Source: Rhodosorus marinus CCMP1338 (lineage: Eukaryota; Plantae; Rhodophyta). Taken from it: 64,000 nt of DNA. A program made the position numbers and the translations under genes. The stretch covers positions 1,922,001 to 1,986,000 of the forward strand of contig JAMWBK010000008.1 in the NCBI GenBank assembly GCA_029953675.1, written 5' to 3'. The stretch's first letter is position 1. Every line of letters begins with the position of its first letter. The notes beneath the pieces were generated by a model. That model was given only the letters and a program-made list of their open reading frames with translations. It was not told the DNA's origin and ran no database searches. Below are positions 5,790-54,708 of the stretch, piece after piece.

Positions 5790-6275
5790 CCCCCCAGCCT
5801 GTCTTTGAATCGATTAGTCTCAACCAGGTCGAGCTATTAAGAGCCAGTTTGGCAGTGCTAAGGGACTTCATCGTGGACGTCACGAATTGCATATTTAGCG
5901 TACCAGAAACTAGAAACGTGGGACTTAATCTTGGCAGGGTCTGTCGGTCAGGTGCCACTCCCGACAGTGTATCCCAGAGATCTGGTTTCCGGTACGGGAA
6001 GGGTCCAGATGTGCCTGGACCCTTCCCGGTCGGTTGGTAGCTCCGTGCGAGGTTGGGATAGCAGATCGGTACCGTCTTGCACTAGGCTTCTTTGTCCAGC
6101 ACCGCAGAGAGCTGCTACCTTAGACGCTCTGTAATATTGCAGAAGAAGGGTTTCACCAGTTGCCATGTCTCCTACTTGAATATCCGTTAAGGATGCTCTC
6201 GATAGCCTCCGCTTGTTTGCGTGTTGTACTTGCCCAGCGCTCTAGGGGTCGATTTTACATCGGCTGGAGCGACAA
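5790..6275 (-). mobile_element. Highly decayed Ty3/gypsy pol relic (RT to RNase H)
   Basis: Broken minus-strand fragments occur in pol order: VAPADVKST..LGKY, VPETRSLGYTVGSG*PTDPAKIK (compare IPETRYLGHLVGSG in the Ty3 piece at ~17040), and LIDSKTGWG (DAS-x-x-GWG-like). Confidence 0.5.
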
Positions 6276-8313: not shown

Positions 8314-8365
8314 TATATCAGTGGGGGTAATGAGCTAGTAAAATTCTCATTACCCCACTGATATA
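8314..8365. repeat. Inverted repeat: ~20-bp stem with 11-nt loop
   Basis: TATATCAGTGGGGGTAATGAG / CTCATTACCCCACTGATATA, perfect apart from one extra G. Confidence 0.9.
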
Positions 8366-15069: not shown

Positions 15070-15319
15070 AAATTCCCACCAATCACATTTTGTGTAAGCT
15101 GTTCATTCAAAATTCCCTAATTTTCTTGCTCTTCGTTTGTTCAATGTTATAATTCTATAGTATTTGTGCCTGCGTTTCTATTGGGTGAACCATAATGTCG
15201 CGTTGTCACCAACACACTACTATTTTTCAAAATAGTGTTGTTCCTTTTTTGAAAACATCTTGATGTTATCAGGCGATGCGTTCTAAAAGTAATTGGAAAT
15301 CTAAGGTTTCGCAGTTATA

Positions 15320-15523
15320 ATGACTGATATAATGACTGATACAATGACTGATGCAATGACTGATGCAATGACTGATACAATGACTGATACAATGACTGAT
15401 ACAATGACTGATACAATGACTGATACAATGACTGATACAATGACTGATATAATGACTGATATAATGACTGATATAATGACTGATATAATGACTGATATAA
15501 TGACTGATATAATGACTGATATA
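15320..15523. repeat. Minisatellite: 17 copies of a 12-bp unit ATGACTGAT(AT/AC/GC)A
   Basis: Counted from the MTDI/MTDT/MTDA translation of ORF 15320..15568. Confidence 0.95.
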
Positions 15524-15600
15524 GGACTAGCTTTCACCTGGTTTGGGTTGAATATTGCACACCGTTGATGAGGTCTTTGTACTGAGCGCAAGCTGAGCGC

Positions 15601-15688
15601 AAGCTCGACCCCGACGACATTCCGAAGACCGCTTTCACCCACACCGTTCGTATTGTACGAATGGCTCGTCATGCCCTTCGGTCTGACA
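15601..15688 (+). pseudogene. Inverted Ty3 RT fragment KLDPDDIPKTAF...LYEWLVMPFGLT
   Basis: Classic RT motifs on the + strand with one frameshift, abutting the minus-strand ...VDLRSGY at 15689. Confidence 0.9.
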
Positions 15689-16320
15689 GTAGCCGCTCCT
15701 GAGGTCGACAACACTGAGGTAAGTTGCCGTGCCGAGTGCATCGAGGCAATCTTCAATTCGCGGCTGGGTTGTCTGATTCGCGATCGTTGATTCAATCGTC
15801 GACAATCAATACATAACCGCTTTCCTCCATCTTTTTTATCCACAAAAAGACAGGGAGATGCGAAAGGAGATGAGCTCGGCCGGATCAGATTCTTCTGCAA
15901 CAAGTTCTGCACCCGCTTCTTAAGTTCCCGTTGGTCTGGGAGGCTCATCCGGTACAGTCCTTGGGTGACTGGTTCTGTTCCTGGTTGTAGTTCGATGTCA
16001 AAATTGACCTCGCGCCATGGTGGTAACGTATCTATATCTTCGGCGAACGCGGTTTTATATTTCGTCGTAACTCATTTGGTTAGACTCTCCGTCTCGCGGT
16101 TTCTTGTTTCGTCAGGTTTTCCTCCGTTGTTGTCGGAGAGATTTTCATACTGGTATTCGTTTTTCTTACTCCCGCATTCTTCGTTGTTATGGGAGAGATT
16201 GTTGTGTTGTAAAATCAAGGTCCGACTTGGTAAGTCAATCTTCGCCTGGTATTTTCTTCAGAAATCCTGCCCCAAATATCCTGGGTTTGCGGCTTCTCGT
16301 ACGACATAGGGTTCCCACTT
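15689..16320 (-). pseudogene. Ty3/gypsy protease C-terminus to RT N-terminus
   Basis: YLGQDFLKKYQAKIDL, FDIELQPGTEPVTQGLYRMS, LIRPSSSPFASPCLFVDKKDGGKRLCID and RIEDCLDALGTATYLSVVDLRSGY, with a stop and a frameshift. Confidence 0.92.
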
Positions 16321-16507
16321 GAATGAGTGGCCTCCCAAGTTTAAAGGTGTCGCACCCAGAATTTCGATAGATGCTCCTGGTGCGGCCGTATCCAATTTCC
16401 CGTGGTTGTGGGATGAATTGGTGTGGCGTCAGGGACCCCTCTCAAGACTGAATGGCTACTGCCAGTGTCAATCAGTAGAGGTACCTGATGATCCGTTTAT
16501 TCAGAGG

Positions 16508-16955
16508 CTAACTACCCTGAGAAGCGAGACGCTGATGACGCGCGTCCACAAACAAAGCAGAATTGGAGCCCCACAGGGTCAAAGAAAGCTCCGTGAGCAG
16601 ACTATCTAAACGCTCTGGGTCGTTGCGAAACAGAGCTCGCAGCCAGCGAGAACCTACACTATCTATCAAGCCAAAGCACTCAATAATGAGGGGGACGAAC
16701 CAGTACATCACCGCCGAATCGCGAAAGTTAGGGTTTGACATCGCTGCCGCGTACTGCGAATCTTTCACTTGCCGCATGGACCGAGCTGCAGCTCCTCGAC
16801 GCCGAGCCGACGCAGGCAGGTACCTGGTCGCCTGAGGACAAGGGATGGAGAGGTCAATGTACTCACTGCGACGCGCATTGAGGTCAGTCACATGAGGTAC
16901 CTCCTGCTGATCATCCCTGTCCCCATCCATTCCTTTTCGAAAGGAATCTTGACGC
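16508..16955 (-). mobile_element. 3' end of a CRE/SLACS-like non-LTR retrotransposon (restriction-like endonuclease domain)
   Basis: YIDLSIPCP...AAARSMRQVKDSQY...FVPLIIECFG...LSLTLWGSNS fits the D...K..Y / FxPxxxExFG / LSxxLxxxN layout of REL domains. AATAAA follows the stop. Confidence 0.7.
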
Positions 16956-17009
16956 CTTTTTCAGCAACGGCGGCGGCGGCTCCTACTGTTGCTCCTCTTT
17001 TACCCGGGT

Positions 17010-17369
17010 TCCACTGCCTACAAGATGTCCTAGGTAGCGCGTCTCTGGTATCCCAAAAGTACGTTTCGATGACTTACTGAAGTTATGTTGGCGTAGTTTG
17101 GTGAAGAGCATGTCCAGGTGCTTTCGGTGCGTCTCCAGGCTCGCGAGTAAATGACAATGTCGTCCAAGAAGATTTTGACAAAGTCATTGAGCTCGTCGAA
17201 GAATATGTTGTTCAGGAGGCGTGTGACCACTGCCGGTGCATTTGTCAGAAGTTGCCGTACCCAGTGCATCGAGGAAATCTTCAATTCGCAGCGGGGTTGT
17301 CTGATTCGCGATCGTTTGTTGATTCAATCGTCGATAATCAATACATAACCGCTTTTCTCCATCTTTTAT
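17010..17369 (-). pseudogene. Second Ty3/gypsy RT fragment with an internal deletion
   Basis: KDGEKRLCIDYRRLN...IEDFLDALGTAT is fused directly to LTNAP...VKIFLDDIVIYS...ETRYLGHLVGSG. About 90% identical by eye to 15720-15835. Confidence 0.92.
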
Positions 17370-17773
17370 AGCGCAAGCTGAGCGCAAGCTCAGTAGAAAG
17401 ACCTGGCCTGGCTTACTGCTTAACATCGGCAATGTGAGAGGCTTTTGTTGGCAGGAGCTCATGATGAATAGAACGTGATGTGGTAGCGTTTGGTGGATCC
17501 TGATTTGTCTCGTTTGTTTGAGAGGGACGGGGGGAGGGTGAACCTGAGCTTGGAGGTCTATTCGCCTGGCTGAATGGGAATCGTCTGGACTAAATTAGGA
17601 GGAGCGCCAGTTTGGTCAGGTGTTGAGAACGAGACTCGGCAACTGTAGCCCCTGCCAAGCGCCACAGGGTGACACAAATTTTAGGATCGCCTCTCCAGCG
17701 AGGTAGTCTCGTTGCAATCTTTTCTCTCAGTGTGTGCGCTTCATTCTTGTTCAAATTGGCTGAGTCGATTTTT

Positions 17774-20468
17774 TCAACCAGAGGCGAATATGTTAGTAGT
17801 TGGACTAATGTTGTACAGCTCGAATCCGTCTCCTTTGAGAGTATCCGATCCATCGTCGGATATTTTCGAGATTGAGCGCTTAGTCGAGTAATCGTACTCT
17901 GGTCGAAGCGAGATTATCTTGTCAAGCTCCTTGTCTGTGATCGACTTCTGCTTGTACCCTATTTCATCAGATATTGGGTTGTACCTGAACGGATCGACAG
18001 AACCCCATTCGAGAGGATCAGTCCCATGTAATAAACGTGACGGCAGAGCAGGCCATGCTCTGTTTTTGACGATGCGACTCTTTCGTACCTTATAATACCT
18101 TCCAGGTCTCCACTCTCAACAATCTCGTCCGGCTCAGGTTCTGCCAGCCTTTGGAAGTTGCCCTTTGCGACCACGATGTGTTCGAGCTTTCTCTTCTCCA
18201 TCGCACGCTTAAGGAGGGCTTCCTCCACCGTTCCAGATGTAATCAACCTATAAACGTGCACCGGCCGGGACTGACCAATCCTGTGACAGCGATCCATGGC
18301 TTGCAGGTCTACCTGAGGGTTGTAGTCGGAATCATAAAATATCACGGTGTCTGCTGCCGTCAGTGTCACTCCAAGACCTGCACATTGAACATTGAACCGG
18401 TTTCAGCTATTGGCAGCCTCTCCAGCCTACCTTCCCACAAATACATTTTTGCGGTTCTGTCCTTACCACCGGCTCGAGTACTGATGAGGAAAATGCTAGT
18501 TTTGCTCCGGTCGTCGTTGAATGAATCCATGTAGGTGGTCCGATTTTCCAAAGTGGTGCTCCCGTCAAGTCTCACATACTCGTATTTGCGAAGATGCATT
18601 ACATCCTCGATAATGTCCAGGATGCGCGTAAACTGCGAGAAGATTAGGATCTTGTGTCCCCGCTTCACCAGCTTGGCGATGAGACGATCCATGACAGATA
18701 TCTTCGAGGCAACTTGAACAAGCCGCTCGGTCGTCGCCAATTCTTCGCCGACAATGCCGTTCTCGTCAGTTTCTTCGAAAAGAAACGGATGTGCACATGC
18801 CTTTCTCATCTGCATCAATCGGTGCTGAAGATTTTGGCTCCCAGCCTTGCGACCGGACGACGAGAGAATTTCGTGAAGACGGTTCTCGCGCGCAGCGTCG
18901 TAATATTTCTAGAGGTCCCCGCAAGCAAAGAGTCAGAATACATCTCCCGTTGGGACTCTGTTAAAACGGCTTGGACATGGAAGATGTGATCGGAATACCT
19001 TCTGCAATGATGTCATCGGAGTGTAGACAACAATCTCCTTCTTGGGCGGAAGAACCTGCTCCACGTCGATCTTCAATCTCCGAAGAAGAAATGGCCGCAT
19101 GATGCTGTGGAGCTTGGTAACGAGCTGGTCCTTCTTCTCCTGTTCTAGTGCGTCTGCGATTCCAGAACGTCGGCAATGGTCAGCGTGGGATAATGACAGA
19201 GACACAGAAGGGTGTCTCACGCGGCTGTTGCACCTCAACTACGAACCAAGACCGACATTCTCCTTTCCGCGAGTCCCAAACTCAAACCATGACTCGAATG
19301 CACTGAGGTCATCGAAGACTTCTGGAAGGAGGAAGTTCAGCAAAGACCACAGCTCTGATAGGTCGTTCTGAAGGGGTGTTCCAGTGAGCAGTAGCCGGTT
19401 CGCCGAGGAGTATTTCTTCAATTCCTTCACAAGCCGGCACTCAAAGTTCTTGATACGTTGCGCCTCGTCCACGACTATGTACTTCCATGGGGCCCGTCCT
19501 AGAACACCCCTGATACAAGGCAGCAGAGGGGCCAGGTTTAAACACAGCATGGATAAAAGTGTCGATATCCAGACTGGAACCTCCTCAAATCGTCGAAACG
19601 CACCTGTCTCGGATTACCATCTCGTACGTCGTACAAACTACTGGGTAGGAAGCATCCATCCTTCCCTGCAACGACCTTCCGATTGTCTTTCTCTCCTTGG
19701 GAAGTCCGTAATAAATTAGACAAGGGACCTGCATCAAACAGTTCAGTTTTCGAAGCTTGGAGATGAGCAAAAGCCGTTATACGTATACTGAGAGAGGGGA
19801 TTGACGCGTACGGATGGCGCAAACTTTGTAAACTCGGACTCCCACGTCTTCAACACGCTCTTCGGGGCTATGACAAGAAACGGACCCATAACTCCGCGCT
19901 GTCTAAGGTAGCAGAAGAAGCTTATCGTCTGACGAACGGCGAGCCAAAAAGACGTAATCTCAGTTGACCGCACACTCAAAGAGGGGAAAGCCTATTCCTT
20001 CACGCAGGGGCTCACCTGCAAGGTCTTCCCAAGGCCCATCTCGTCTGCTAGGATACCGTTTATTCCATTCTCATATAATGAGACCATCCATTCTACTCCG
20101 GCAAGTTGGTAGTCCCGAAGTTTGGCACCAGAAACGAGTTTCGGCTGTTCAAAATTTCTGTTCTGGGTTGCCGTGCGCCGCACATCAAAGTTCTCTGCTT
20201 GGGCGTGGCTAACGACGGAGTTTAGCTTATCTTCCTTTTCCGCTTGTCCGTTTTTTCTTCGCTTCTTCTTGGCCCTGTGGTCAAAGCATCCATGGGTGAG
20301 CTGTCAGATGAATTACGAACGGTCGTCTTCAAGATCTTGTCAATTGAATGCTTGTGCTCACTGAGTTTCATCCGAGCGTTCCTTAAGCCTTCCCACTAGA
20401 AACTGGGAGTACACTGACGTTTTCTCTAGAAGGCTATCTAGTTCTGTGAACTTCGTTTCAACCTCCAT
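17774..20468 (-). CDS. DDM1: DDM1/LSH (HELLS) SNF2-family chromatin remodeller, multi-exon
   Basis: N-terminal [18 protein letters not shown], then [53 protein letters not shown] and [21 protein letters not shown]. Last exon ends ...[17 protein letters not shown]. Confidence 0.92.
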
Positions 20469-22115
20469 TCCCTTCCGTCAAATCGAAACCCAATCTCGCA
20501 GCAGTTTTCTACAAGGTCGAGTTGTCCCCAATCACTACGAAACTTGAGACAGGATCCACTAAAATCACATGGTAAAATCCATATCTCTGGGCCCAGATTT
20601 CAACAGAACTTCTCGAACCAGTGGAAAGAAGGACGATCAAAGCGCCGATCGCTTCTCGGACGCAAAGTGAACGGTCGGATCCAGAGCAAGCAGTGTTATC
20701 CGTGCAGCCTTCAATCACTCCCCAAAAGGATTTCCTCCTTACCTACCACTTGGAATCAGCTCTCTCGCTGAAACAGAAAGAGATTCTCCTTTACCCGGCC
20801 CCAGCTCCTAAATCCAAACCTCCTTCCGGGCGGTGAATCAGAAATATCTCCAACAACCGTTGTCATAAACTCAATAAAAAATATTATGTAATTTTCAATA
20901 TACAATTATCGAATTAAGATGTGTAGCAGAATTTTCAGACGGGTGTTACAACTTCATTGGAGAAAGACTTGAGACCCGTTTGATCATCGCCAATTATAAC
21001 TCTTCCCGCGCATCCAGCTTTCCCCTACTTTTCTGAATGAGCCGCTGAAGTTGCTAAGACGATGTGATGATCGTGCTTTTGTGGTTACCAGTAGCGGGAC
21101 GGCATCTTCCTTTTCATCCTCGTGAGTTAGGTTAGGCATCGCTTTGGGAAGACAATGACGTTCGTGAGCTCTCGCACGCTTGCGGCCTGTTTTTTATCAT
21201 TGTCTAGACTCGTGTGGTTTTAGGAGTCGGCGGGTCTTGATATCAATTCTGCTCTTCACTTCCTCTCATCGGCTTCTTGCTTCAGGGTGGCAACTGCCAT
21301 CTCGCAAACTGCCCCTCGTCATGTAGATGGAAGAAGGGAGAGTGGTTTTTTCCTGCACAGCATAGTCAATCGACGCAGTAGAGATTTCATGAAGTGGCGA
21401 CGGACTCACACTCTAATTTCATCAGCTCGACAGGGGCGCTGTCCCCACCAACGCGTTTGTGCATTCTGGCTCGCTGCAAGCGTCCGACACATCATCGGTT
21501 CTTCCACAGCTCGGTATGTGGGAGAGGAACCTACCTACAGCTCAAAAAAGAGCCAATACAACCAAAGCAGCAAAAGGGAGGAACGGCGCCTCGCTCACAA
21601 TTCCTTTTCGTAACAGCTCCGACGTGTAAAACAAAAAAATCTATTGATTGAAAACAATCAAAATAATACCTTATGGATTGTCCCCAAAGTAGCCGTTTCT
21701 AAATATTTTGTGTTCGAATAAAATAGAATTGTTTCTTCGGGTAAACATTGGGATTTCCTGACATGTGACGCTTAGGCAGACCAGCTTCGAGTTGTCATTA
21801 GAAGGGGGTTGTGGTTCAATGCAGGAGTGGCGAATGTTACATGAAAAACGGATTTTTTTGAAATAATTTTGTGGATACGGGGTGTTTAATAGGGTAATTA
21901 GAAGGGGGGATATGAAGTTAAAGTGTGAACACTAGGGCTTTTTCGTTAAGGGTGAGGAACGGATGCTTGGTTGGGGGTAAGGGGGGAAGGGGGAGAGGGT
22001 GGAGATCTGGTGGATGAAGTACTGGTGAAAGGCATCAAGCTAAGATCCTTTTTTCAAGGTTGCTGTCTGGTATTGTTGTACAGAGGTAAGGTTTTTTACC
22101 TAGTCGTGCGGAAAC

Positions 22116-27307: not shown

Positions 27308-30300
27308 CAAGGCGATGGGTTATTTCTCTTTCTGGGTCGTTATGGCGAGGGAAGAAAGAGAGGGTGGCGGTTTGCCAAGGGGGCTGAGGATGCCTAAACC
27401 CTTCTCGGGAGGAGAAGGGAACAGGTCGTCGTTCGGCCGATGGAAGTTTCAGATGCTCGCGTACCTAAACTTCCACAACTTCGCCCTGTCGAGAGTAACT
27501 TCTTGCTCGACAGCGGCTGCACCGACCACGCTTGTAACCAGCGGAGATATTTCCACGTTTACAAGGAAAGCGAGCAGACCCCAATATACTTAGGGAACAA
27601 CTAGACAAGTCCCGCCGTTGGGAAGGGGGGTTAGCTTCCCCTTGCGCTCAGGCGCGGATCTAGTACTGAAGTACGTTTATTACTACTTTCGGTGAGAACT
27701 TGTCTAGCTAAAGGGGTCCGACTCCATAGATAAGGTCCCAGCAAATTGGTCAGAAGTAAAGGAAACGCCTCAGTTATTACTTGTAAACTCGGAGCTGACG
27801 ACCAGTTTGTCGCGGACATCATTCCTTATAAGTCACCAGTCATAAATGTCGCGGGCAACAGGCGAAAGTCCAGAGAGAGGATGCATCAACGACTAGAGCA
27901 TCCAGGAGAAGAGGCTTTGGACGTCCTAGCCAGACGGGACTAATCGACGTGGAGGAGAGAGGAGCCGGTTGCAGGTATTGCAGAAAGGCCAAAACAACGG
28001 CAGGCACCCTGCAGCAACCTCTCCGGCGTACGGAGAACCCTGGGGATACTGTGCAGACGGATATCGTGGTCCGTTTCCTGCCGGTATGCGAAAGGAGAAA
28101 TACCGGCGGTCTTCGTGGATGAGGGGACTAGCTGGATTTCGCTCTTCGCTCTCACGAAGAAGAGCGAGGTGGATGAGGCAATGAGGGAAGTAATCATTAG
28201 CGTCCAAACCCAGTACGGCTCAAGGGTGATGAAGATTAAGTCAGATCGGGCGAAGGAGTACGAAGGCGCCGAAGTGATGCTGAAAGCCTCGGAATACGCT
28301 GGGATCCCTCCGCTCCACAACTCCAGCGAGTAATGGCATCGCGGAGAGGGCGGTTAGGACAGCAACCGAGGGGCTCCGGGCGTGCGTCCTGGCGAGCGCG
28401 CTACTAACATGCTTCTGGCCCGAAACAGTACCGACAGTAGAGAAGGGCCTGAACCTGACACCGCGTAAGTCCCTAAAGTGGAAAACACGACTTGAGCTCG
28501 TGACGAAGAAGGCTCCGGACGTAAAGGGGATGAGGTTCTTCGGGTGTCCCGTCGAGTATAAGCGTGCGGAAGCTGGCAAGCTAGCCAAACTTGACTCAAG
28601 GATTGACAGCGGCATCCTTCTGCATGTGAGCGAACCGAAGGTCACTAGAGTATACAGACCTGCGCGGAAGGAGTTCGTACACGTTCGACACTTCAACACA
28701 GCTGAGGATCTGAATAAACCTGAAGAGATGAGGATCAATATCCGGCGAGAGCTACGAAAAATGTACATGGCAGTTCCATCGGTGTACATCTAACGAGCAA
28801 AGGAGACTCAATGTACGATGTTGAAATCCCGAAAATTTGGGAGGGAGGCGATGCGTACACCATACACAGAGGATTGGAGAAGAGCTGTCGCGGAAGAGCT
28901 CGTAGCGAGCCGGGAGGAGCTCCGCTCGCTACGATCAAAAAATTGCTTGGAGCCTCATTCGTAGGTCAGTGGTGTAGAGGGGAGAGAAAATTCTACAGTC
29001 GCGGACCGTGTTTTAAGTGAAGCGAGCTCTGGACGGGTCTGTCCGACGCTTCAAGGTGAGAGTAGTTGCCAAGGGCTTCACGCAACGGGAGGGCATCGAC
29101 TACGAGAAACTTTTTTCGCCGACGCTTGAATTCACCAGTATCAGAGCAGTCTACACCATTGCCGCGATCGAGGACCTCGAGATCGAGCAGGCAGATGTGA
29201 AAACTGCAAATCTGAAAGAAGAACTCTACATGCAGCAGCCGCAGGGGTTGGAGGAACCCGGAAGGAACGATATGATTTGTAAACTTAACAATGGCTTGTA
29301 TGGTTTGAAGCAAGCCGGAAGAATTTGGCACGAGACTTTGAAGCGCGACCTCACGAACCATGGGTTCGAGCCTACGAGGTCTGACCGATGCGTTTTCAGG
29401 CGGAACCTTACGATCGTCGCTGTCTACGTGGACGATCTGTTGGTGATCGGTAGGAAGGCTGACGAACCGGGTGCGAAGATGGTGCTCAGCGATCTGTATG
29501 AAATGGAGTTCCTTGGTGAAGTCGATGAATTCTGGCGTCAAGATAGTGAGGGATAGGCCGAGGAAACTTGTCTACCTGAACCAGACCTGGTACTTTGAGG
29601 CATGCGCTAATTCACTCCAATGCCATGTCTGGATGCCGGGAATTTAACACACCGGCGACCAAGGAGCGCGCAGAGACCGTTACAGGGAACCTGATGACGG
29701 ATTTACCTTACCAGGCGCTCGTGGGTTCTCTGGTCTACATTAGCACGAGAAACCGCCCGGACATTGCCTACGCTGTGGGACAGCTGGCGAGGAAGATGAG
29801 TAGTTACAGGGTAGGTGATTGCGAACAGGCGAAAAGAGTCGTCCGTTACCTGCAAGGGACACTTAACCACTCCTCATGTCCGGGGGATATTTCGGAATCT
29901 GGTTACATATCAGAATCTGATCGCATGTACCAGATAATCGGGTACAGCGATTCGGATTGGGCGGCTGATCAGGAGAGCAGACGGAGCACCAGTGGGATAC
30001 CGGTAACTCTGAATGGTTCCGCAGTGAGCTACAGGTCATGGCGGCAACGTTCGGTGGCCCAATCAGCCACAGAGGCCGAGTATCAGCCTCTGGGGGACAT
30101 GATGTCGATGCAACGGTGGTTGCAAGAACTTCTCGCAGAGTTGGGCAGAAACGTCGAGAAACCCTTGTTAGCCTATTCGGACAAAAAATCCTGCATATCT
30201 TGGGCAATAAGGTACGAGCAACAAGATGTCGAGAAATGTGTCCGTGAAGCTACTCTATTCGAAGGAACGATGTGCGTCGGGAGAGGTTAAGTTGTCATTA

Positions 30301-36099: not shown

Positions 36100-39000
36100 T
36101 CACTGATTGTAGTCCGCTTGCGACGTCTTGCAATCGAGCCTGGCACTCCTTTGTGCACGGCTCTGTCGTTGCCGTTGAGTGGCTCCGACGTCTGTCGAAT
36201 CCGATTTTTTCCCTGCACCAAGCAGGGATGACGAATTCACCCCGGCAGATGTGCGTCCTGATCGCACATCCCTGACCTTGAGCTGCGACGATTCTTCCTC
36301 TTCTCCCGCGGGGTTCACTTCAACTTCCCCGCCTTCCGTTGGCTCAGCTGGAGGGTCTTTTGCGCTCCTTCCCTGTTCCACTCCCAGTTCTTTCCCCGGA
36401 GAATCTGTGGTGTTCTCATCCAACACGGCGAAGCGGGCGGAAGACAGCTCGGATTCTGGATCGACCACGGTCAAGTCCTCTGGGTCTTGCTTGTTATAAA
36501 TCAATGGGTCCTCTGAAACCCCAATAGCATTCGGGGTTCTGTCAGCAGGTTGTTCCTGGTGCTCTGACGTCACAGCTCCCAATGATTGACTGCGTATCGC
36601 CATGGCTCTGCGCTTCCTCGGGGTCGTCGAGCGATTTTTCACGGCAGGCTTGATATCGCTTTCTTGCGAGCTTGGTTTCCTTGGAAGGGGCATGTCAATC
36701 CGCTGATCACCTGCGACATACTGCTCCTGTTCGCGTGGCGAGAGTTCTACTGCAATGGCTTCGCCTGTACTGTTAAGCTGGTCTAGATCCGAGGGGGTCG
36801 GGAATCGACTAGAATCAACCTCCGCAGCGTCCGCATGCAGTGTGGCCGTTGCCCGCTCCCTTCTCGGCGGAGTACGTCCGTTCTCGATCCCCGTCCTAGT
36901 CCCTCCTAGCACGTCTGATTCGATCTGTAAATACTCCTGCGCGATGACAGCTTCACTATCCGATTTCTCAGCCAGCCCTCCAGATATTCTCATCTTGCGA
37001 CTTGTGACAGGATCAGCTCCGCTGCGGGTACTCCCTGTTCGTCTCGGATGTGTGTCCAAGTCGGATCGCTTGTCAGATTCCTTGGAAGCCACTTTCCCGT
37101 CTTTCGACTCTCCTATTAACCTCTGAGCCCCTCTCTCTTCTCTGTCAGTTCCACGGTCTTGTGTCTCCTCGCCTTTCGATTTTTGGATCTGCTTCGCGGA
37201 CGATCGCTCCGCGCCACGTTCCTCCTCATGGCCCGATACATTTTCCAATTCGCCAGCATGACTTCGTCTAGTGGGTCTGCTTCGGGGGGGTGCGCCTGCA
37301 TCTTCCAGCAAGCGTCTCTCTGCATCGCTTGGAGCAGCGACAGGTCGTACGGTATGGTTTTCACGTCCTTCTCTGTCGACCGATTCCGCGAAGACCGGCT
37401 TGTCAACTGCTGTAAGTCCAACAATCTCCGGCACCCCGGAAGTTGGCAGTTGGTCTTCGGACTTTTTGTTCTCTTGTCTCTCCGAGGTCTCGAATACAAT
37501 GTTCGGCTCCACAGTTTGATTCTTCGCCCTGCTTTGCCCTCGTGTTTCTTCAGAATTAGTAAGTTTTTCTTGCTTGTCAATGGGCGCATCTGGGTGGACC
37601 GGTTTGGTCGGCTCCTGCACAATCTGCTGGTTTTCCTCAAGGGCTTGCGTATCCTTCATGCCACCGGTTGATCGTTTTGGATTCGTCTTCTCGCCTGCTG
37701 ACTTTCTCGTCTTCACCACCACAGCATCCACTGTACCAGGCTTCTTCGCGTGCTTCGATCTCCTAGATCGACGGCCATTTCCGCTCTCCTTGCTTCGCTT
37801 CTTCGGTTGGGGCGTTTCTCTTGCTTCCAGAGCTTTATCGAGTTGGGTGGATTTCTTGGACTCGGTTTTGGGGTCGACGTCGATATCAACGCTAGTTCCT
37901 GATTCTATCACACCGGCTTCGATACTCCCTGCCGCTAGCTTGACTTCGGTATCCACATTCTCTGCTGATCGCTTGATCTCGATTTTTGGAGTCACGGCGT
38001 ATGACTTGAGCTCTGCTGTGGCCGCTGTTGCGGATTGCTCGACCTCCACTTTAGCGTCCTTCGTAGATTCCGCTTCTACCTCCGGTTCCAATTGGCGCGA
38101 AGATTCCGCTTCTACCTCCGGTTCCAATTGGCGCGAAGATTCCGCTTCTACCTCCGGTTCCAATTGGCGCGAAGATTCCGCTTCTACCTCCGGTTCCAAT
38201 TGGCGCGAAGATTCCCCTTCCGCAGTTTCTCGATCTGCAGCACTGTCCACGACTCGGACTTCGCCTTGCTTCCCTGAACTCTCCCCTTCACGTGGTTCTG
38301 ACATCACGGATGCTGTTTTCCCCGGTTCTCGCTTTTCAATTGATGGAGCTGGTTCTCCTGAAAGGCGTGGTTCTGTTGGCTTGGAATCACTTGCAAGAGT
38401 ACTACCTTGACTCAGTTCGTAGGTGAGTTCCGCATCTGCTTCCGCAGTGGTTCCCGCTGCACGCCTTTCAGGCTTTGCCCCAGCTTTTCTGCCGCGACAT
38501 TGACCGTTCTTCGCTCCCGTCTGTTCGACCTCCATTTCGTCGGTCTTTTCAACGGGAACCTGCTGACGCGACTCGGTGGTCTGTTGCTCCTTAGCACCAG
38601 CTTCCTTGCTTTCCTGAGAAGCGCCTTTAGTGATTTCCTTGCTGGTCGTGGCATCCTCTGGCACCTGAGTCGTCCGCACTGCTTGAACTGAAACTGAAGA
38701 TTGCCTCCCCACCAAGGACGGGGTCTCAGATTTCTCCACAGCTCGGCTTTTACTACCCCTCGGAGTTTTCTTCCGTTCTTTCTTTCGCGACTCTCCCTCG
38801 CTCAGTATGCGACGTTTTCGGGTTGGTTTAACCTTCTCCGCTGGGATTTGTGGAGTGGCGATCGGAGCCTTTCCTGATTCAAGCTCTTCTTCCTCCTCAA
38901 CGTACTCGGAAGAGGCGTTCGCCTTCATCACTGGTTTCTCATTCTTGTTGGATTCACCTGGAGGCTGATCTCGTGTTCTACGTGGCTCTGCACTTGCGGA

Positions 39001-42000
39001 GCTGCCAGCGGGAGTCAATCCTGAAGACGCTCCTGTTGGTTCAGAAGCAATCCTAGCTGGTGCGGGATCCGCCTCCGTCGCCGCAGGGACGGCTCGCGGA
39101 GTTGACTTTTCTGCACTTGCGCTGGTTTGCCTTAGTTCCTTGCCTGCACGACCCGCTTCCCCGTCGTTAGTTCGCTCCCTCTCCTTGGCTCTAGTTGAGC
39201 CCTTGGGCCTTCCCCGCCGTCCACTGGTCGCAGTTGGGGCTGATTTAATAGGTGTTGCCTGAGATCCTGGTGCTTCGTCACCCTGAGGGCCATTTATTGC
39301 TTCAACGGTCAACTTCTTCGATACCGCAGAAGGCTGAGCCGGTGTCTTTGCTTCCTCTTTCCTTTCTACTTGCTGATTAGCATCGTTCGTTTTCTCAGGA
39401 GTCTTTCTGGGCCTGCCCCGAGGCCTTCGTTGAATCTTCACTTCTTCTTCCTCGTAGTCTTCATCATCGTCCTTCTCAGATTCAGATGACTCAAGTTTAG
39501 GGATCGAACCTTGGTCGTTCTCACCCCGCGAAATCATATCAACGTCGCTGTCGAACGAAGTTCCGTCCATTCTTCGGCTAACCCTCGCTTCGAATTTTCT
39601 TTGCTTTGCCAACGCCGCTTCGTTCAAATCTTCTCCAGACTCCAAAAGGTTGGTGATTTCCAGTTCAGTAAGATTATCCGCGTAGCACACTTCCTTCCTC
39701 TTTCTCCGGCCTCGACCCATCTGCTCTTCCTTTTGGACTTCGACAGGTTTGTCCGGAGCCAATACCCAATCCGGAAGGTCATCTTTGGACAAGAGAAGGC
39801 GATCGCTTTCCCACTCCCCACCGGCTTCCTTTCTTGCTGCCTCCAAATCTTCAGCTTGCTTATCCATATCCATAAATGTTTCGAACTCCTCCTCTCCCCT
39901 GGCGATGAGCTTGTTCAGGAGCTCCTCCGTCGGAACGCCCTCCTCCTCTCTGTTGGACTCCTCAGCCTTGTGGTCCCGAAGCATGTTCTTAAGGAGCTCT
40001 CTTCTCTCAGCGTCCGAACTTTTGTTGTCAAACCTTCCGGCCTGAATGATGAGCTGGTCCTTGCGGAGTTTTTGGTTTGCTTGCTCAAGGATCTTCTCCT
40101 CAACCGTGTTCGCCGAGACCAGTCGAAAAACTCGCACTTCATTCTTCTGACCAATTCGCCAAACACGATCTTGCGCTTGTAGATCCATCTGCGGGTTCCA
40201 GTCGCTGTCCAAGAAAATTACAGTATCCGCCGTTTGCAAGTTCAAGCCCAATCCACCAGCGCGGGTGGAGAGAATGAACACTCTGAATTCGTCGGATGAA
40301 TTGAACATGTCCAACATGTCCGGTCGATCATCCGCTTTGGTCCTCCCATCTAATCGTAAGTACTTGACTTTCATATGTTCAAGCAGGGTGCCGAGGTAGT
40401 CGAGTGCTGTAGTCATTTGAGAAAAAATTAGACACTTGTGGTTGAACCGGAACAGCTTTGGCAAGACGCGAGACAAAAACTCGAACTTTCCGCTTGAGCG
40501 CACGAGAAACGAGCTTGGCAATGTCCAGACTTGATCGTCGTCGTAGAAGAGAAACGGATGGTTGCAGATTTTCTTCAGCTGCATGATCATATTGTTGAAC
40601 CTCTGAAACCCCGCTCCATCTCCAAGGGACACAGCAGCTTTGTTCTGTACCTGGCGATACAGGACCTTCTGCCATTCGGATTGCTGGCAACGAATGACGG
40701 TCTCAATTTTATCCGGAAGTTGTGACTCAACTTCCGACTTCAGACGCCGAAGGAGAAACGGTCTCAACACTTGATGTAACCGATTGATAATAAGAAGTTT
40801 TTCCTCTTCGTTCAGACCCTGAGTTTCCCCCGACCCACCAAGACTTTTCTCCTGTCACAATTCAATGGAATGAAAAACAGTTTGAGCAACTAGAACGGGC
40901 TTGCCCGCCAAAGGTCATTAATGGCTTGGTTACGCGCCTCTCCGCGCCAAGTTGGCCTTACCTGAAATGGGGCACTAAACCAGTGCTCAAAATTCTCGGC
41001 GGTCTGGAAGATTTCCGGCAGAAGAAAGTTCAGCAATGCCCACAGCTCCGTCAGGTTGTTCTGGAGGGGTGTTCCCGTCAACAGCAAACGATTATTCGAG
41101 CGATAATGCGTCGCAAGTATTTGGGCTAGCTTCCCGTCAGCGTTCTTCATCCGGTGCCCTTCATCGACAATGACGTGCCTCCACTTTGACTTTCCCAGAA
41201 CTTTCTTGTCGCGCACAACAAACTCGTATGTTGTCAACAACACATTGAGATCGTTGTTGCCCTTTAAGTATTTTAGTTGGAGCGCCTTCCGCGCGTTCGG
41301 GTCTCCTCGATAGACTACTTTTGTAGCGGAAGGTAGCCAGAGGTCCATCTCGCGTACCCAATTCCCCATTGTGGAGAGAGGCACGATGATCAGGAACGGC
41401 CCCTGCACGTCTTTAGATTCCATGAGGTAGGCAATGAGCGAAATGGTCTGTATCGTCTTCCCGAGTCCCATCTCATCTGCGAGGATTCCATTCAGCCGAT
41501 TGTTGAAGAGGGAAACCATCCACTTCAACCCCTCGAGCTGATAGTACTTCAGGGTGCCCCCTACAAGTATGGAAGGCTGCCTAACCTCCTCCTTGATTGT
41601 GTGAGTTATGGAGTAATACTCGTCACGTCGCCGTCGCATTGACTCATACAGGGTATTTCCCCCTTTTTCTTCCTCCTTCTCCTCGATTGCTACGTCCTCC
41701 TCGCCCTCTTTACTATCATCCGCGAGACGCTTCTGCATTTGCACTTGCGCACCTAACTGTTTCATGTACTCACCGGTCTGCTCCAGAAGATGCATAACGC
41801 GATCGCTCTTCGTCTCCTCAAGGAGTTTCATATACTCCTCCTCATTGTTCTCCTTGAGAGCCTTGAACCGGTCCTGCTCGAGTTTCTTCCGCTGTCTCTC
41901 TCGCTCCTTCTCCTTCTGAACGTGGTATTTCTCAGTATCCCTGCACAGCTTCAAGCGTGCCTGATTCCGGTTGTTTTGCCAATCACGGAAGTTGGCGACG

Positions 42001-44600
42001 TGCTCCATGAGAAGGCCCAGGCTACGCTTCCTTTCTTGTCTCTGTCGATCCTCCATATCCCTTCGCTGCTTCATGACTTGCCTCGCAACTCGATTGCGAT
42101 GAATAACTGAGCCGTGAATCGTGTCCTCGTGCTCTCGTCGTCGGGTGGGCATCGCTTTCCCTGACCTTCGGATTGGCGCTACTAGGCTTCTTAGCACGTC
42201 CCTAGTACTAGTTCGGACCTTGCGCTGTAGCTGTAAAAGCCGGATCTTCTTCATTTCTATCACGGCCCGACGTCTAATCTCTTCTGGAAGCTCCAAGGGA
42301 AGGTCGTGGAGTTCTACGAGGCGATTCCCCATCCGATCTATCATTTCCTTCTCACGCATCTCGAGCATAAGACGTGAAACTTGCTGCTTCGACTTTCGGT
42401 GTTTTACTGCCTGCTGAGCGTTTTGGCTCATGAGCTTTCGCCCATTGCCGATTTCATGATCAAAATGCCCGTTCCCTTTGTTCACTTGAGCGGACTTCTC
42501 GCTCTGATGTTCTGGAGACGTCTTCAGGGCCCTTTCCTTTTCCCTTGCCAGCTTTTGCATCGGAAGTCCGTTCTCTGTGTTTTGAATGTTTACCCGCACA
42601 GCACCTTGCCCCTGCCCGAGCGGTTCGGGGTTAACCTTTTTTTCATTCATTCTTTCAGAGCTAGTTAGGCCTTTAGAATTCGACGACGCGGAAAACTGCT
42701 CGACGGTAATGCCCGGCGTGTGAGCTGGTTCTGTCCTCTTCCGTTCCAAGTTAGAATTATGCAGCGTGACATTTCCCTTTGCCGGATCTGGGTCCAGCTC
42801 AACGCCCGCTACTGGTTGCATCAGTGCCTGTCGTCGGTTGAACAGCTCCTCTTTTTGCTCCATTAGCTGTCTGTTGAAGAGCTCTTCCTTTTGCTCCATA
42901 AGTTTCTGCAGTTGGAGCTCGAGTTCCGAAGAGCCATTCGCGGCTTTCCGATCCTTGCGATTGTCTTGTTCATTCGCAAGCGGATTCGCTGCGCCGCCAT
43001 CATTAGCTAAGGAAACTTGCGGCTTGAACGCCTCGCGGGAAGCCTTGTCGGCGACTAAGCCCTCCAGCAGTCCTTCCGCTGTCGCGTCCTGGGCATTCGA
43101 CTGAATCTGGTTCTGCCCCTGAATCAGCGCCTGGATCTGAGGCTGCAAGTTCGTGGCTACTTGAGGTTGAAGCGGAGTCTGGCTCTGTATCTGGGCGTGA
43201 AGTGCTGCTTGAAACTGGGCTTGCATCTGAGCCTGCATTCGCACTTGTTCTTGCATGTGCGCTTGCCTCTGGGACTCCATAGTATTCTGCAGGTGTGTGT
43301 TGACTTGGTCATTCTGCATCTGGGTCTGGCCCTGCGGTTCCTGCATCATGGGGTGCATCTGTCCGTGGAGTTGGGCCGGTCCTCCTTTCATGGCTCGCAT
43401 CTTTTGACTTTTCAGCATCTGTGGGTCGACTTGCCTTTGGAATTGTTGCTTCAGCATCTCTTGCTGTAACCGTTGCTGCATTAAATTCTGGGTTTCCGCC
43501 TGCTGCGTTTGTTGCTGCATATAGATTTGATTCGCCATCTGCACGGACAATTGCGCGTCCTGCTCGTTCATCGGTATTTTTTCAGGCTGGGTTTGTTGCG
43601 TTCGCATGAGCATTTGCATCTGCAGCTGCTTGTCGTCGAATTTCTCCATCGACTCCCTCTGACCTTGCCGTACACCTGACATGAGGAAAGCTTTGTCCTG
43701 ATTCGCGTACTGCCATGCGCTCTCTTTCGCAACGTCACTGCCCGCATTCGATCCGGACTCCACACCGAGCATCGGTCCTGACTGCATTAACGCGTCTTGA
43801 GCTGCCGCAAGCTCGCTTCCATAGGGGAAACCTTGTTCCGGTGCCATTCCGGCCCCTGGTGAGTTGTTCACCGATTGTACCATGTCGTTCATAGCTAGCT
43901 GTCTTGATAGTAGCAACGAAGGATCTTCCCGTTGTAGTTTTGTACGTGGGCTGCTCTTCCTCGCTGAACCTACAGCCATCTGATTGTTATGGCTGTTTGC
44001 CAGGTTAGTATTCACCCCCATCAGCGCTGCGTTTCCCTCAGTCGGATACAGGAGTTCGTCCTAATCAGGTGAAGTTACCAGGCACAGTGAAAAAAAGTTT
44101 AGCAAAGCGGAGCTCCAGATAGAAATAGTTTAGCAAAGCGGAGCTCAAGATAGAAATAGTTTCGTTTGGAACTCATGCGGCAACACCAAGAAACGTTGGC
44201 AGCTTACCGATGCCTGCCCACGTCCTTGATTATCCTGCGGGCGAAGTAAGCCTTCCACACCCGAATCACCATTAAATAAACTCGAACCCATTTGCGACTC
44301 ATCTACAACTCCCAAGTCAAGACCGTTTCCGAACTTCCAGTCGTTTTGGGTCATACTTGGCTCGCCCACAGGAGCCTTGCCACCTATGAGCTCGTCTACG
44401 GCCGCGTCCTTTCCCATTGCCAATGCGAAAGCACCGTCCATGCCCCCGGGCACTCCGTCTCTGTCGTGCGGCTGTCCTTGTAGAAACCTCGACCCCATAG
44501 AAGACTCTCCCAGAAGCTCAGCCATCTGCCCGGGCGGCTGAAGCTCCTGTTTCAACCTCCCCCGCCCATAGAATTCCTCCTCGAACGCTCTCGGGTCCAT
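36100..44600 (-). CDS. SNF2: SNF2/BRM/SYD-type SWI/SNF ATPase with Q-rich N-terminus, HSA, SnAC-like region, AT-hooks and a ~1000-aa disordered tail, 3 exons
   Basis: [70 protein letters not shown] and [13 protein letters not shown]; AT-hooks RPRGRPRK and RRGRPKG. In-phase GT-AG introns at 44207-44061 and ~40960-40852. Confidence 0.95.
38065..38215. repeat. Four perfect 36-bp coding tandem repeats ([12 protein letters not shown])
   Basis: AGATTCCGCTTCTACCTCCGGTTCCAATTGGCGCGA x4 plus a 7-bp partial copy, with no spacers. Confidence 0.97.
44096..44162. repeat. 31-bp tandem duplication in SNF2 intron 1
   Basis: AGTTTAGCAAAGCGGAGCTC(C/A)AGATAGAAAT x2 plus AGTTT. Confidence 0.9.
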
Positions 44601-51093: not shown

Positions 51094-51142
51094 TGGACAA
51101 TTGAACAAGTGCTAGCAGTGCTAGCACTTATTCAATTGTCCA
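51094..51142. repeat. 49-bp near-perfect palindrome (24-bp arms, 1-nt centre)
   Basis: TGGACAATTGAACAAGTGCTAGCA-G-TGCTAGCACTTATTCAATTGTCCA; arms match at 23/24. Confidence 0.95.
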
Positions 51143-53970: not shown

Positions 53971-53982
53971 CTAATCATCTCT

Positions 53983-54017
<35 letters not shown>

Positions 54018-54121
54018 GACGCCAGCGGCAACGCCTGCAGATCGACCTGCACCTCTTCGGGCGCCTATTCCTCCTGCATCTGTTGCACCTCCTGCGGCAA
54101 CGGCGTCCCCTGCGACGGCCA

Positions 54122-54168
<47 letters not shown>

Positions 54169-54293
54169 ATCATCGTCATCGTCGTCGTCATCGTCGTCGC
54201 GATCCCTTCCACCACGTTCGCGGTCATCATCCTTGTCATCGTCGGCGGCACGAATTGCAGTGCGACAACGCACGTCCTCGTCATCGTCATCAT

Positions 54294-54325
<32 letters not shown>

Positions 54326-54708
54326 TCGTCGTCATCGTCGTCGTCGTCGTCATCGTCGTCATCGTCGTCGACATGAGTTACGGAGAAGTTTTCGAGGTCA
54401 TCATCGTTGTCATCGTCATCGTCATCGTCGTCGTCATCTGGGCAAAGGTCACACATATTGGGACAGCTGCGGGCAAATCTTGCACTTTTTTTGCACCTTC
54501 TTTCTATCTCATCGTCGTCATCTCCACCGAAGCGTCTACTGCACCATCCTTTGTCGACACAGGGCTTTCCGCAGTATCCGGGACATAGCTCTTTGAATGC
54601 CGCTTCATCGCACATCACCATCGGGTAGTCATCGCACTCAACCTCGTCAGCTCTGACCGCTACGGCGAGCAGAGCCAAGGCCAAGAAAGCCACAGACAGC
54701 CTTTTCAT
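53971..54708 (-). CDS. Secreted ShKT-domain protein, Arg/Asp-rich paralog with poly-Asp tracts (245 aa)
   Basis: Signal peptide MKRLSVAFLALALLAVAVRA, the same Cys scaffold as 49299..49820, three long poly-D runs encoded by mixed GAC/GAT, and an Arg-rich 6-Cys block. TATAAA lies ~145 nt upstream. Confidence 0.88.

Follow-up and report, generated by a model that had tools for sequence, protein, structure and literature searches.

Features of the locus

The window, meaning the whole stretch of DNA that was analysed, comprises 64 kb of the genome of Rhodosorus marinus CCMP1338. A DDM1/HELLS-like SNF2 gene ends within it, with its last coding exon on the minus strand at 17775..17989 (90 % identical to the C-terminal end of the MMETSP isoform P0126); the homologues retrieved for this gene were MMETSP proteins and distant (~50 %) orthologues, and the R. 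marinus orthologue was not among them. About 370 nt downstream of the stop codon lies a block bounded by two identical 22-mers and by a pair of 17-nt inverted-repeat arms. The cargo between the 22-mers (15607-17369, 1763 bp) is retroelement-derived, and gives a profile match to reverse transcriptase (RT; RVT_1) and a weak match to aspartic protease.

Insertion site

The 22-mer AGCGCAAGCTGAGCGCAAGCTC is present in exactly two copies in the 64-kb window, at 15585-15606 and 17370-17391 (0 expected in shuffled sequences), which confirms the identical repeats that the initial annotation had placed at the borders of the block. The 17-bp inverted repeats described just outside them were likewise recovered: the left arm, AGGTCTTTGTACTGAGC at 15571-15587 on the plus strand, recurs with one mismatch on the minus strand at 17388-17404 (right arm, GCTCAGTAGAAAGACCT), so that 16 of the 17 positions pair. 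The pair is unique, with no third site in the 64-kb window, where the expected count of the 17-mer was 0.15 and a count of 2 was reached in 1 of 100 shuffles. The sequences flanking the arms (..GTTGATG / arm and arm / GGCCTGG..) contain no direct repeat, in agreement with the earlier statement that a target site duplication (TSD) is absent outside the inverted repeats.

Removal of the insert and one 22-mer, by joining 15606 to 17392, regenerates the 49-nt hairpin that had been proposed, a palindrome with 17-bp arms and a 15-nt spacer whose inverted arms fold far better than shuffled sequence (single-stranded DNA fold of -15.6 kcal/mol, z = -4.7). The 22-mer consists of the 11-mer GAGCGCAAGCT twice in tandem, the period-11 identity spanning 24 nt, and a 38-mer retaining a single copy of the 11-mer folds at -16.0 kcal/mol (z = -7.7) into a clean hairpin with a GCAA loop. 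Within the 49-mer sequence the 22-mer spans positions 15-36, with 14 nt to its left and 13 nt to its right, and is centred on the dyad, as would be expected for symmetric nicks. These data support an insertion at the centre of a hairpin-forming site. The reported 22-bp target duplication stands as far as the identity of the two 22-mers is concerned; because each is built of two tandem 11-mers, the length of the duplication is ambiguous and may be 22, 11 or 0 bp.

Five short unique palindromes were seen in 86 kb of Rhodosorus DNA. The intact hairpins noted earlier at 8314 and 51094 in the window both exist and fold with z = -8.7 and z = -9.8, respectively. No Rfam match was obtained in the window, and the hairpins are thus not known RNA genes. 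The hairpin at 51094 was considered as a second case of central tandem duplication (GTGCTAGCA twice); this was dropped since TGCTAGCA is itself palindromic, which makes the structure a plain palindrome with 24-nt arms.

Nested LINE fragment

The cargo is interrupted on the minus strand at 16490..16892 by the 5'-truncated 3' end of a non-LTR retrotransposon with a restriction-enzyme-like (REL) endonuclease, comprising the C-terminal part of the endonuclease (..YIDLSIPCP..K..QY..FVPLIIECFG), a stop codon and the 3' end ...AATAAACGGATC; the truncation falls within the endonuclease domain, at 16892. It is flanked by the 9-bp repeat GAGGTACCT at 16478..16486 and 16894..16902, and a shared word of at least 9 nt arose in 30 of 20000 random flank pairs (p ~0.0015). 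The fragment is 91-94 % identical at the nucleotide level to three copies in R. marinus L003 and shares its 3' nucleotide(s) with them, all four copies ending in ..AATAAA(C/T)GGA(TC) with no poly(A). With its own TSD and a defined 3' end, the fragment is an ordinary target-primed reverse transcription (TPRT) insertion nested in Ty3 sequence, not a loose scrap. Nests of one transposable element (TE) in another involving the same LINE family occur in L003, where RVT_1-positive open reading frames adjoin and interleave with the REL copies and no intact full-length element was seen.

The earlier identification of a LINE piece with a REL endonuclease is therefore upheld for its C-terminal part, and its description as CRE-like is replaced by membership of the REL-endonuclease group (R2/CRE/NeSL-type). 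The relative P0128 shows the full domain (CTLCG..H....C, RRH, ADLVV, VDLSI), and in a phmmer search the H..CP.VQGAR.RRH motif weakly matched the structure of the R2 protein, 9nl2_A (E = 0.024); no Pfam family matched the endonuclease piece. The CCHC plus PD..D..K-type domain of the relatives (P0128) is the likeness to R2, CRE/SLACS/CZAR, NeSL, Utopia, R4 and Hero, and the fragment itself resembles this group in its 5' truncation, its fixed 3' end without poly(A) and its TSD. Most described REL-endonuclease elements are target-specific (PMC4640811), whereas the flanks of the four 3' junctions available here are unrelated, with no common or palindromic target, and do not suggest site specificity.

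Excision of the LINE and one copy of its TSD makes the Arg-rich stretch at 16903..17003 (minus strand) contiguous with the protease (..RKGMDGDRDDQQEVP/LLIDTGSS), and by this contiguity the stretch is probably a gag/NC-protease linker; no reference alignment covers it. Its reading as a continuation of RT (..PPPPLLKKASRFLS..) was unsupported, since alignments from 150 reference proteins stop at 17004. The junction with the adjacent RT segment probably lies at or near the right end of the stretch.

Ty3-derived segments

The remainder of the cargo derives from a Ty3-type element. The best relatives of the stretch from protease to RT are Ty3/chromovirus-like polyproteins (E = 4e-45), and the RT motifs KKDGxxRxCIDYRxLN, GYxQ, DIPKTAF, MPFGLTNAP and F(L/I)DDI can be read in the cargo. 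The leftmost segment, here called c (..DPDDIPKTAF..YEWLVMPFGLT; 15607..15688, reference positions 331-354), is sense on the plus strand and thus inverted relative to the rest of the cargo, and contains one frameshift. It is followed on the minus strand by the segments a and b together with a putative protease (..KKDGGKRLCIDCRRLNQ..YLSVVDLRSGYCQ; 15683..16486, RVT_1 profile 1-80), a degenerate stretch with stops and frameshifts in which the protease motif LLIDTGSS (DTG at 16469-16461) precedes the RT start by ~200 codons on the same strand. The match to Asp_protease_2 (E = 0.0056, 17.8 bits) is below the 24.3-bit Pfam cut-off. The inverted segment c and the minus-strand segments meet at the hexamer CTGACA (15683..15688), which supplies the L-T codons of c on the plus strand and the C-Q codons of GYCQ on the minus strand. 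At the right, segment d (LTNAPAVV..FLDDIVIYS..YLGHLV; 17004..17248, minus strand, RVT_1 profile 124-203, 39.9 bits) begins at the hexamer TGTCAG (17243-17248; CTGACA when the coding strand is read). It is fused directly to segment a' (KDGEKRLCIDYRRLNQQTIANQTTPLRIEDFLDALGTAT; 17249..17369, minus strand), a second copy of a (15721-15838), with b and c absent between them.

When mapped on Ty3 references of ~50 % identity or less, the RT segments tile reference positions ~271-430 without loss, in the order a, b (ending in GYCQ), c (..FGLT) and d (LTNAP), and c starts one codon after b ends in the reference numbering. The apparent deletion in the right-hand RT copy corresponds to b and c, both of which are retained at the left end of the cargo, and the c/b inversion junction and the d/a' junction both fall at CTGACA/TGTCAG. 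The overlaps at the junctions are up to 6 nt between the site and c (AAGCTC), 3-6 nt between c and b (CTGACA), and 0-1 nt at each of the other two, and are typical of microhomology-mediated joining or template switching. AAGCTC forms the last 6 nt of the left 22-mer and had been proposed to be shared with RT codons K-L; this reading is plausible, and the reference RTs have R-V at the aligned position. The block had been presented as four non-collinear scraps: the Ty3 protease and RT parts are indeed non-collinear, one of them is inverted and the REL piece is present, but the disorder was overstated, as the LINE is a nested TPRT insertion and the three RT pieces are complementary with shared breakpoints. 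This complementarity argues for the rearrangement of one Ty3 template, or of two related ones, and not for independent captures. The two copies of a differ by 8 substitutions and a 4-nt indel in ~118 nt (~7 % divergence), which suggests two templates, and could also reflect decay of an in-situ duplication after insertion. Every Ty3 piece carries stops and frameshifts: either the event is old or the templates copied were already dead.

Two known routes to such an arrangement were rejected. L1-style twin priming has the wrong geometry for the inverted piece, because the 3' end of c joins the complement of the 3' end of b, as in a snap-back. DIRS-like elements have a Ty3-related RT and integrate as a circle; an element of this kind was rejected since a protease motif is present and the best matches are chromovirus-like.

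All junction ends of the cargo are internal to RT and none is at an element terminus. No LTRs, RNase H, integrase or 4-6 bp TSD at LTR ends were found in or around the block, and the outer junctions bear neither LTR ends (TG..CA) nor poly(A) nor a LINE 3' end. The block is accordingly Ty3-derived DNA and not a Ty3 insertion, and neither integrase, TPRT from a LINE tail nor a terminal-repeat transposase is indicated. No intact Ty3 of the cargo family was found in the window, in R. marinus L003 or in four Rhodosorus transcript contigs. The searches for further termini covered 64 kb of the CCMP1338 genome and 22.6 kb of its relative L003, and no other copy of the 17-mer or the 22-mer was present in these 86.6 kb. 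A 24-nt degenerate terminal pattern had one match among JGI metagenome/transcriptome contigs, in an unrelated, bacterial-type contig without other similarity.

Origin of the insertion

The reading that we favour, with a probability of about 0.4, is that aberrant Ty3-derived DNA was captured during repair of a staggered break centred on the palindrome. The anatomy and breakpoints of the block, the LINE nested in it together with the 9-bp TSD, and the assignments to families are observed; from them we infer the break and its symmetry, the sequence in which events took place, the kind of donor and the polarity of insertion. The pre-insertion site would have consisted of the 17-nt arms round a GCAA-looped centre that already carried the 11-bp tandem duplication, near the DDM1-like gene. 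A break centred on the dyad, with nicks ~3-4 bp into each arm, would leave the central 22 nt as complementary overhangs on both ends, and fill-in of each overhang would produce the 22-bp direct repeat. The gap would then have been closed with extrachromosomal or ectopic Ty3-derived DNA, with neither integrase nor transposase, and with up to 6 nt of microhomology (AAGCTC) possibly used at the left junction. The patch may have been an aberrant recombinant that drew on a single Ty3 template or on two related ones, degenerate before they were copied. A snap-back between TGTCAG and CTGACA, the inverted hexamers on either side of segment c in the RT gene, would have had c as its loop; this would place c in inverted orientation beside b, a and the protease, and segment d, beginning at the same hexamer, would have been fused to the second copy of a. 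The REL-LINE fragment is a separate, ordinary target-primed insertion into the Ty3 sequence.

End-joining capture usually entails little or no target duplication, and a 22-bp duplication needs a special staggered break, which counts against this reading; the argument from dyad centring would also weaken if the true duplication were 11 or 0 bp. Nor was an empty site, a polymorphism or a donor locus seen in the Rhodosorus DNA searched. Palindromes that break in yeast have arms of hundreds of bp (~300 bp), and attack by Mre11 needs loops of <9 nt (PMC8053094), so that the present site, with 17-bp arms and a 15-nt spacer, falls outside the range of arm and spacer shown to break in vivo. As a hypothesis, a cruciform-break origin of the insertion is plausible.

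The same break could instead have been filled from a single ectopic donor: synthesis-dependent repair would have made one copy of a pre-existing decayed Ty3/LINE mosaic and placed it in the broken palindrome as filler DNA. We regard this as unlikely. All cargo pieces are degenerate, the TSD of the LINE shows at least some of the mosaic to have formed in a separate, conventional event, and the L003 nests offer a precedent, yet the cargo begins within one codon of the native b/c boundary of RT. That boundary doubles as the inversion breakpoint, a match that copying from an arbitrary point would produce only by chance, and no donor locus was found in the little Rhodosorus DNA searched. Improbable, too, is a Pack-type non-autonomous DNA transposon with the 17-nt arms as its terminal inverted repeats and acquired retroelement fragments as its interior. 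Pack elements typically carry host-gene fragments, and although near-perfect 17-nt terminal inverted repeats do bound a non-coding mosaic here, the cargo is retroelement DNA, the 22-mers inside the arms are direct instead of inverted, and the arms, in contrast to a pair of transposon ends, fold with one 22-mer into a compact hairpin. The absence of a TSD outside the arms and of a second copy of the arms in the 86 kb of Rhodosorus DNA, or in the JGI contigs, makes such a transposon less likely than repair capture.

The machinery of the REL-LINE family could also have been responsible, its endonuclease, which has a fold like that of Holliday-junction resolvases, nicking the cruciform-prone site 22 nt apart and its RT jumping across Ty3-derived RNAs to give a chimeric cDNA. 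Template jumping by the R2 RT is established, a long TSD is a hallmark of TPRT, and the family is present in Rhodosorus in several 5'-truncated copies with a defined common 3' end. In addition, R2-type proteins are active on 4-way junctions, and the endonuclease that they carry is similar to junction resolvases (PMC6895275, PMC3636483). We nevertheless hold this origin to be as improbable as the transposon, because the LINE 3' end is at neither outer junction, the LINE piece is internal with a 9-bp TSD that differs from the 22 bp, the DNA abutting the left repeat is sense-strand RT and not cDNA of a sense RNA, and the four LINE 3' junctions lack a common or palindromic target. A TE-derived circle (eccDNA or an aberrant circular Ty3) that recombined at a shared 22 bp would make the block a permuted PR-a-b-(inverted c)-a'-d. 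Read circularly, it could be seen as a single RT region with a', the 22-mer and inverted c standing in place of c between the native TGTCAG/CTGACA, and the order from d to the protease would be that expected of a circle or tandem form; the circle would, however, have to carry the chromosomal 22-mer, neither a recombinase gene nor any other sign of circles was found, and the divergence of a and a' is left unexplained, which together make this origin highly improbable. An assembly artefact, through a chimeric join or a repeat collapsed at the palindrome, has equally slight odds. Palindromes and TE mosaics are error-prone in assemblies, but the junctions on either side are clean, the two 22-mers match exactly and lie symmetrically about the dyad, and the coherent logic of the cargo, with its nested LINE TSD and tiling RT segments, is unlike random misjoins.

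The patching of a break with borrowed retroelement DNA is a known kind of event. Such repair is well documented in yeast and mammalian experiments and has rarely been dissected in wild genomes; we know of no such dissected case in Rhodophyta. If the favoured repair-capture reading is right, the locus is a natural, fully resolved red-algal case of a break healed by aberrant retrotransposon DNA, whose junctions show how the patch was assembled (a 6-nt inverted-repeat snap-back, template switches and a long palindrome-centred duplication). It would also hint that small palindromes may be break-prone in the Rhodosorus lineage, and would have the modest practical value of a PCR-testable insertion polymorphism beside a DDM1-like gene. 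A more speculative extension, which we consider very improbable, is that short unique intergenic palindromes in Rhodosorus are recurrent targets of a structure-specific nuclease, possibly the resolvase-like endonuclease of the REL-LINE, that makes symmetric nicks at the two hairpin tips; central tandem duplications (the 11-mer here) would result where the ends were simply refilled, and insertions with long dyad-centred duplications (the 22-mer) where refilling was accompanied by capture. Were this true, the locus would be a natural record of cruciform cleavage coupled to capture of retroelement DNA.

Comparison with known systems

The capture of yeast Ty1 cDNA at double-strand breaks is classic work. 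There are published cases both of retrotransposon cDNA or other stray DNA captured at breaks and of inverted insertions templated by fold-back (PMC11372161, PMC11724301, PMC1920257). The block resembles break capture (yeast Ty1 cDNA, mitochondrial DNA/NUMT and filler DNA; PMC11372161) in its independence of integrase and transposase, its ends inside coding sequence and its microhomology or blunt junctions, and captured inserts can likewise be rearranged or consist of several parts. It differs in that those events usually lack a long target duplication and have not been reported from the centres of short palindromes, whereas here a 22-bp (or 11-bp) duplication is present at such a centre, with no experimental break. 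Fold-back/MMBIR/FoSTeS-type insertions (PMC11724301) share with it an inverted segment joined at short inverted-repeat microhomology (TGTCAG/CTGACA), several switches in a template of ~1 kb and a flanking duplication; the yeast fold-back insertions are mostly 5-34 bp, in contrast to the segments of 82-900 bp seen here, and the present templates are retroelements, possibly as cDNA. Pack-MULE and Pack-CACTA elements similarly have inverted termini that enclose captured non-collinear fragments, from which the block is set apart by its lack of a TSD outside the termini and of a second copy, its direct 22-mers inside the arms and its retroelement cargo. In palindrome-mediated breakage (long inverted repeats, PATRRs) a dyad-centred break and symmetric processing of hairpin or cruciform tips are expected, as would apply here, but the palindromes known to be fragile exceed in length by an order of magnitude (PMC8053094) the present one, whose 17-bp arms and 15-nt spacer are not of a kind known to be fragile.

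Structure of the insertion site

The block at 15571-17404 holds 1763 bp of retroelement cargo (15607-17369) within a split palindrome, in which identical 22-mers, AGCGCAAGCTGAGCGCAAGCTC (15585-15606 and 17370-17391; chance expectation none), lie inside inverted 17-nt arms (15571-15587 and 17388-17404) that differ by one mismatch. Joining the flanks regenerates the 49-mer of the initial annotation, which folds as a DNA hairpin at -15.6 kcal/mol (z = -4.7), and no direct repeat is present outside the inverted repeats. The earlier observation is confirmed and was sharpened by the structure of the 22-mer, which is an 11-mer duplicated in tandem with period-11 identity across 24 nt; with one 11-mer only, the site folds into a clean hairpin of 38 nt whose loop is GCAA (-16.0 kcal/mol, z = -7.7). 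Because of this tandem structure, the pre-insertion site could have had two, three or four units, and the apparent target-site duplication (TSD) could be 22, 11 or 0 bp long. If 22 bp, it spans nucleotides 15-36 of the 49-mer and so lies on the dyad, flanked by 14 nt on the left and 13 nt on the right. A scan of JGI contigs for the terminal motif returned one match, a chance bacterial one.

Intergenic DNA of Rhodosorus repeatedly contains near-perfect, unique palindromes 34-55 nt long, with three intact in the 64-kb window (5995-6028, 8314-8365 and 51094-51142) and two in L003, a 22.6-kb stretch of R. marinus contig JAMWBK010000013.1 (6081-6120 and 9545-9599). None as stable was found in shuffled sequence, and they differ from one another in sequence and so are not one repeat family.

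Composition of the cargo

The coding sense of the cargo is mostly minus strand. Reverse transcriptase (RT) segment a' (17369 to 17249, minus; KDGEKRLCIDYRRLNQQTIANQTTPLRIEDFLDALGTAT) is fused directly to segment d (17248 to about 17004, minus; LTNAPAVV..FLDDIVIYS..YLGHLV), which matches the RVT_1 profile at 124-203 with 39.9 bits. An Arg-rich minus-strand stretch of about 100 nt, where no reference protein aligns, separates d from a 403-bp LINE fragment (16892 to 16490, minus), followed by protease (LLIDTGSS) and RT segments a and b (16486 to 15683, minus, ending ..YLSVVDLRSGYCQ) and by segment c on the opposite, plus strand (15607-15688; ..DPDDIPKTAF..YEWLVMPFGLT). The Ty3 pieces were assigned to their family by a library search with the 95-residue protease-RT stretch, which gave 27,189 matches, the best (E = 4e-45) being Ty3/chromovirus-like polyproteins.

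The Ty3 pieces were placed on P0230, a chromovirus-type reference polyprotein, where positions about 271-305 are represented in both a and a', b reaches GYxQ (322), c extends from 324 as far as ..FGLT (353), and d from LT(351)NAP to about 430. By this mapping, the gap in the right-hand copy (a'-d) is exactly b + c, kept at the left end as a-b-inverted c. The inverted RT and the REL piece described initially among four non-collinear pieces are present; the Ty3 pieces tile one RT and are parts of it rather than unrelated scraps.

The RT breakpoints coincide: c terminates in CTGACA (15683-15688), which on the opposite strand is the C-Q codons closing b, and d starts with the same hexamer (TGTCAG, 17243-17248, plus strand). 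Segment c would be bounded in the native gene by TGTCAG and CTGACA as a pair of 6-nt inverted repeats, and the geometry of the c/b inversion is that of a snap-back, with the c 3' end joined to the complement of the b 3' end and c as the loop. The microhomology is put at 3-6 nt because the Q codon is conserved and the C is unusual (the norm being GYHQ). At the left outer junction, AAGCTC, the final six bases of the 22-mer, does read as K-L in frame with ..DPDDIPKTAF, as had been proposed; reference RTs have R-V there, so that, judged against those references, as many as 6 nt probably overlap. The d/a' and a'/22-mer junctions overlap by 0-1 nt. Over about 118 nt, segments a and a' are separated by 8 substitutions and a 4-nt indel, a divergence that points to two templates or to considerable age.

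Nested LINE fragment

The LINE fragment is a nested insertion of the conventional kind. It shares its minus-strand 3' end (..CCTCTGAATAAACGGATC, without poly(A)) with three R. marinus copies that have different flanks, and at its 5' end it is truncated within the endonuclease domain: where the window diverges, the R. marinus copies run on upstream (..RVADLV/VTDLNARR). It is flanked by a 9-bp direct repeat, GAGGTACCT (16478-16486 and 16894-16902), a word of that length being shared in 30 of 20,000 random flank pairs, and excision of the LINE with one repeat leaves an unbroken frame, ..RKGMDGDRDDQQEVP/LLIDTGSS. Three copies in L003 have 91-94% DNA identity to window 16489-16892, and the protein relatives found all came from Rhodosorus marinus (NDN08_000224, 54% identity) or from JGI-held culture transcriptomes. 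P0128, a longer protein relative, carries the motifs C..C..H....C, RRH, ADLVV, VDLSI and K..QY and weakly matches the R2 protein structure 9nl2_A (E = 0.024) over the H..CP.VQGAR.RRH motif. RVT_1-positive ORFs are interspersed among the R. marinus LINE copies.

At L003 12146-21548, REL-LINE copies of either orientation are densely nested, with some 5'-truncated 3' ends inserted within RT regions of other copies, and the annotated gene NDN08_000224 in L003 is a LINE endonuclease remnant. Further REL-type relics lie at window 52889-53522 and 59143-59650 (66-86% DNA identity to several L003 copies), 52889-52973 being another LINE 3' end (..CTCTGAATAAATTG). The Rhodosorus transcriptome contig L006 has two adjacent LINE 3' ends in opposite orientation (392-435 and 452-766), another inverted arrangement for the family of the fragment in the block.

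Genomic setting

The window is nuclear DNA of a unicellular red alga of Rhodosorus type. The neighbouring DDM1/HELLS-like SNF2 gene has 90-95% protein identity to MMETSP transcripts, and its last coding exon (minus strand) ends near 17775, which places the block about 370 nt downstream of the stop codon, either within the 3' UTR or immediately past it. This gene (17775-20477, minus; several introns), which adjoins the block, is one of two SNF2-family chromatin remodeller genes in the window; the other, large gene (36100-44021, minus) was read as two long ORFs and has a 36-bp coding tandem repeat in its C-terminal part (38065-38220). Left of the block is a low-GC (0.40) spacer, then the 5' end of a cyclic-nucleotide-binding channel gene; inside the spacer, about 50 bp left of the palindrome, is a 12-bp minisatellite (15319-15521; AATGACTGATAC x 17, 97% matches). 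A Ty1/copia-type RT fragment at 29017-29553 (plus), probably reaching about 30290 (RVT_2, E = 1e-38), is the second LTR-retrotransposon relic of the window and is unrelated to the Ty3 pieces. The hexanucleotide/trinucleotide tract at 53850-54708, (TCATCG)n and (GTC)n, has overlapping ORFs on opposite strands (His/Arg-rich versus Asp/Asp-rich) and is probably a repeat of low complexity, whether coding or non-coding.

Origin of the insertion

An integrase route is not indicated, since LTR ends are lacking and the cargo ends inside RT, nor is LINE TPRT from its own tail, a LINE 3' end or poly(A) being absent at both outer junctions. Cut-and-paste transposition is likewise not indicated because no TSD flanks the arms on the outside and the 22-mers within them repeat in direct orientation, points that also speak against a Pack-type transposon, which we consider improbable. 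What the outer junctions leave is a repair-type insertion, and the preferred reading, given a probability of roughly 40%, is a break at the palindrome dyad patched with aberrant Ty3-derived DNA. Such a break would have left complementary overhangs of ~22 nt, symmetric on the dyad, from nicks 3-4 bp into each arm; these would then have been filled in and the gap bridged with Ty3-derived DNA that had undergone an earlier snap-back at TGTCAG/CTGACA and more template switches, using a pair of related templates of the kind that co-packaged RNAs supply. Against this stand the rarity of long duplications in end-joining capture, the ambiguous length of the duplication, a palindrome far shorter than those with demonstrated fragility (PMC8053094), and the fact that no empty site was seen. 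The initial proposal of retro-DNA capture into a hairpin was borne out in its anatomy and is supported in part as an interpretation.

A pre-formed mosaic copied out of a single ectopic donor is a rather unlikely source of the whole block. TPRT mediated by a REL-LINE, with template jumping on a junction-like target, for which R2 endonuclease and four-way junctions offer a comparison (PMC6895275, PMC3636483), is given little credence, and integration of circular TE-derived DNA and misassembly are both very improbable.

Comparison with known events

Each element of the preferred reading has a precedent: breaks that took up Ty cDNA and mitochondrial DNA (PMC11372161), inverted insertions templated by fold-back (PMC11724301) and endonuclease-independent L1 insertion (PMC1920257). 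Interest in the block is modest unless small palindromes turn out to be recurrent break or insertion sites genome-wide in the Rhodosorus lineage; it is a tidy case of a known event class, in which the palindrome-centred duplication is unusual.
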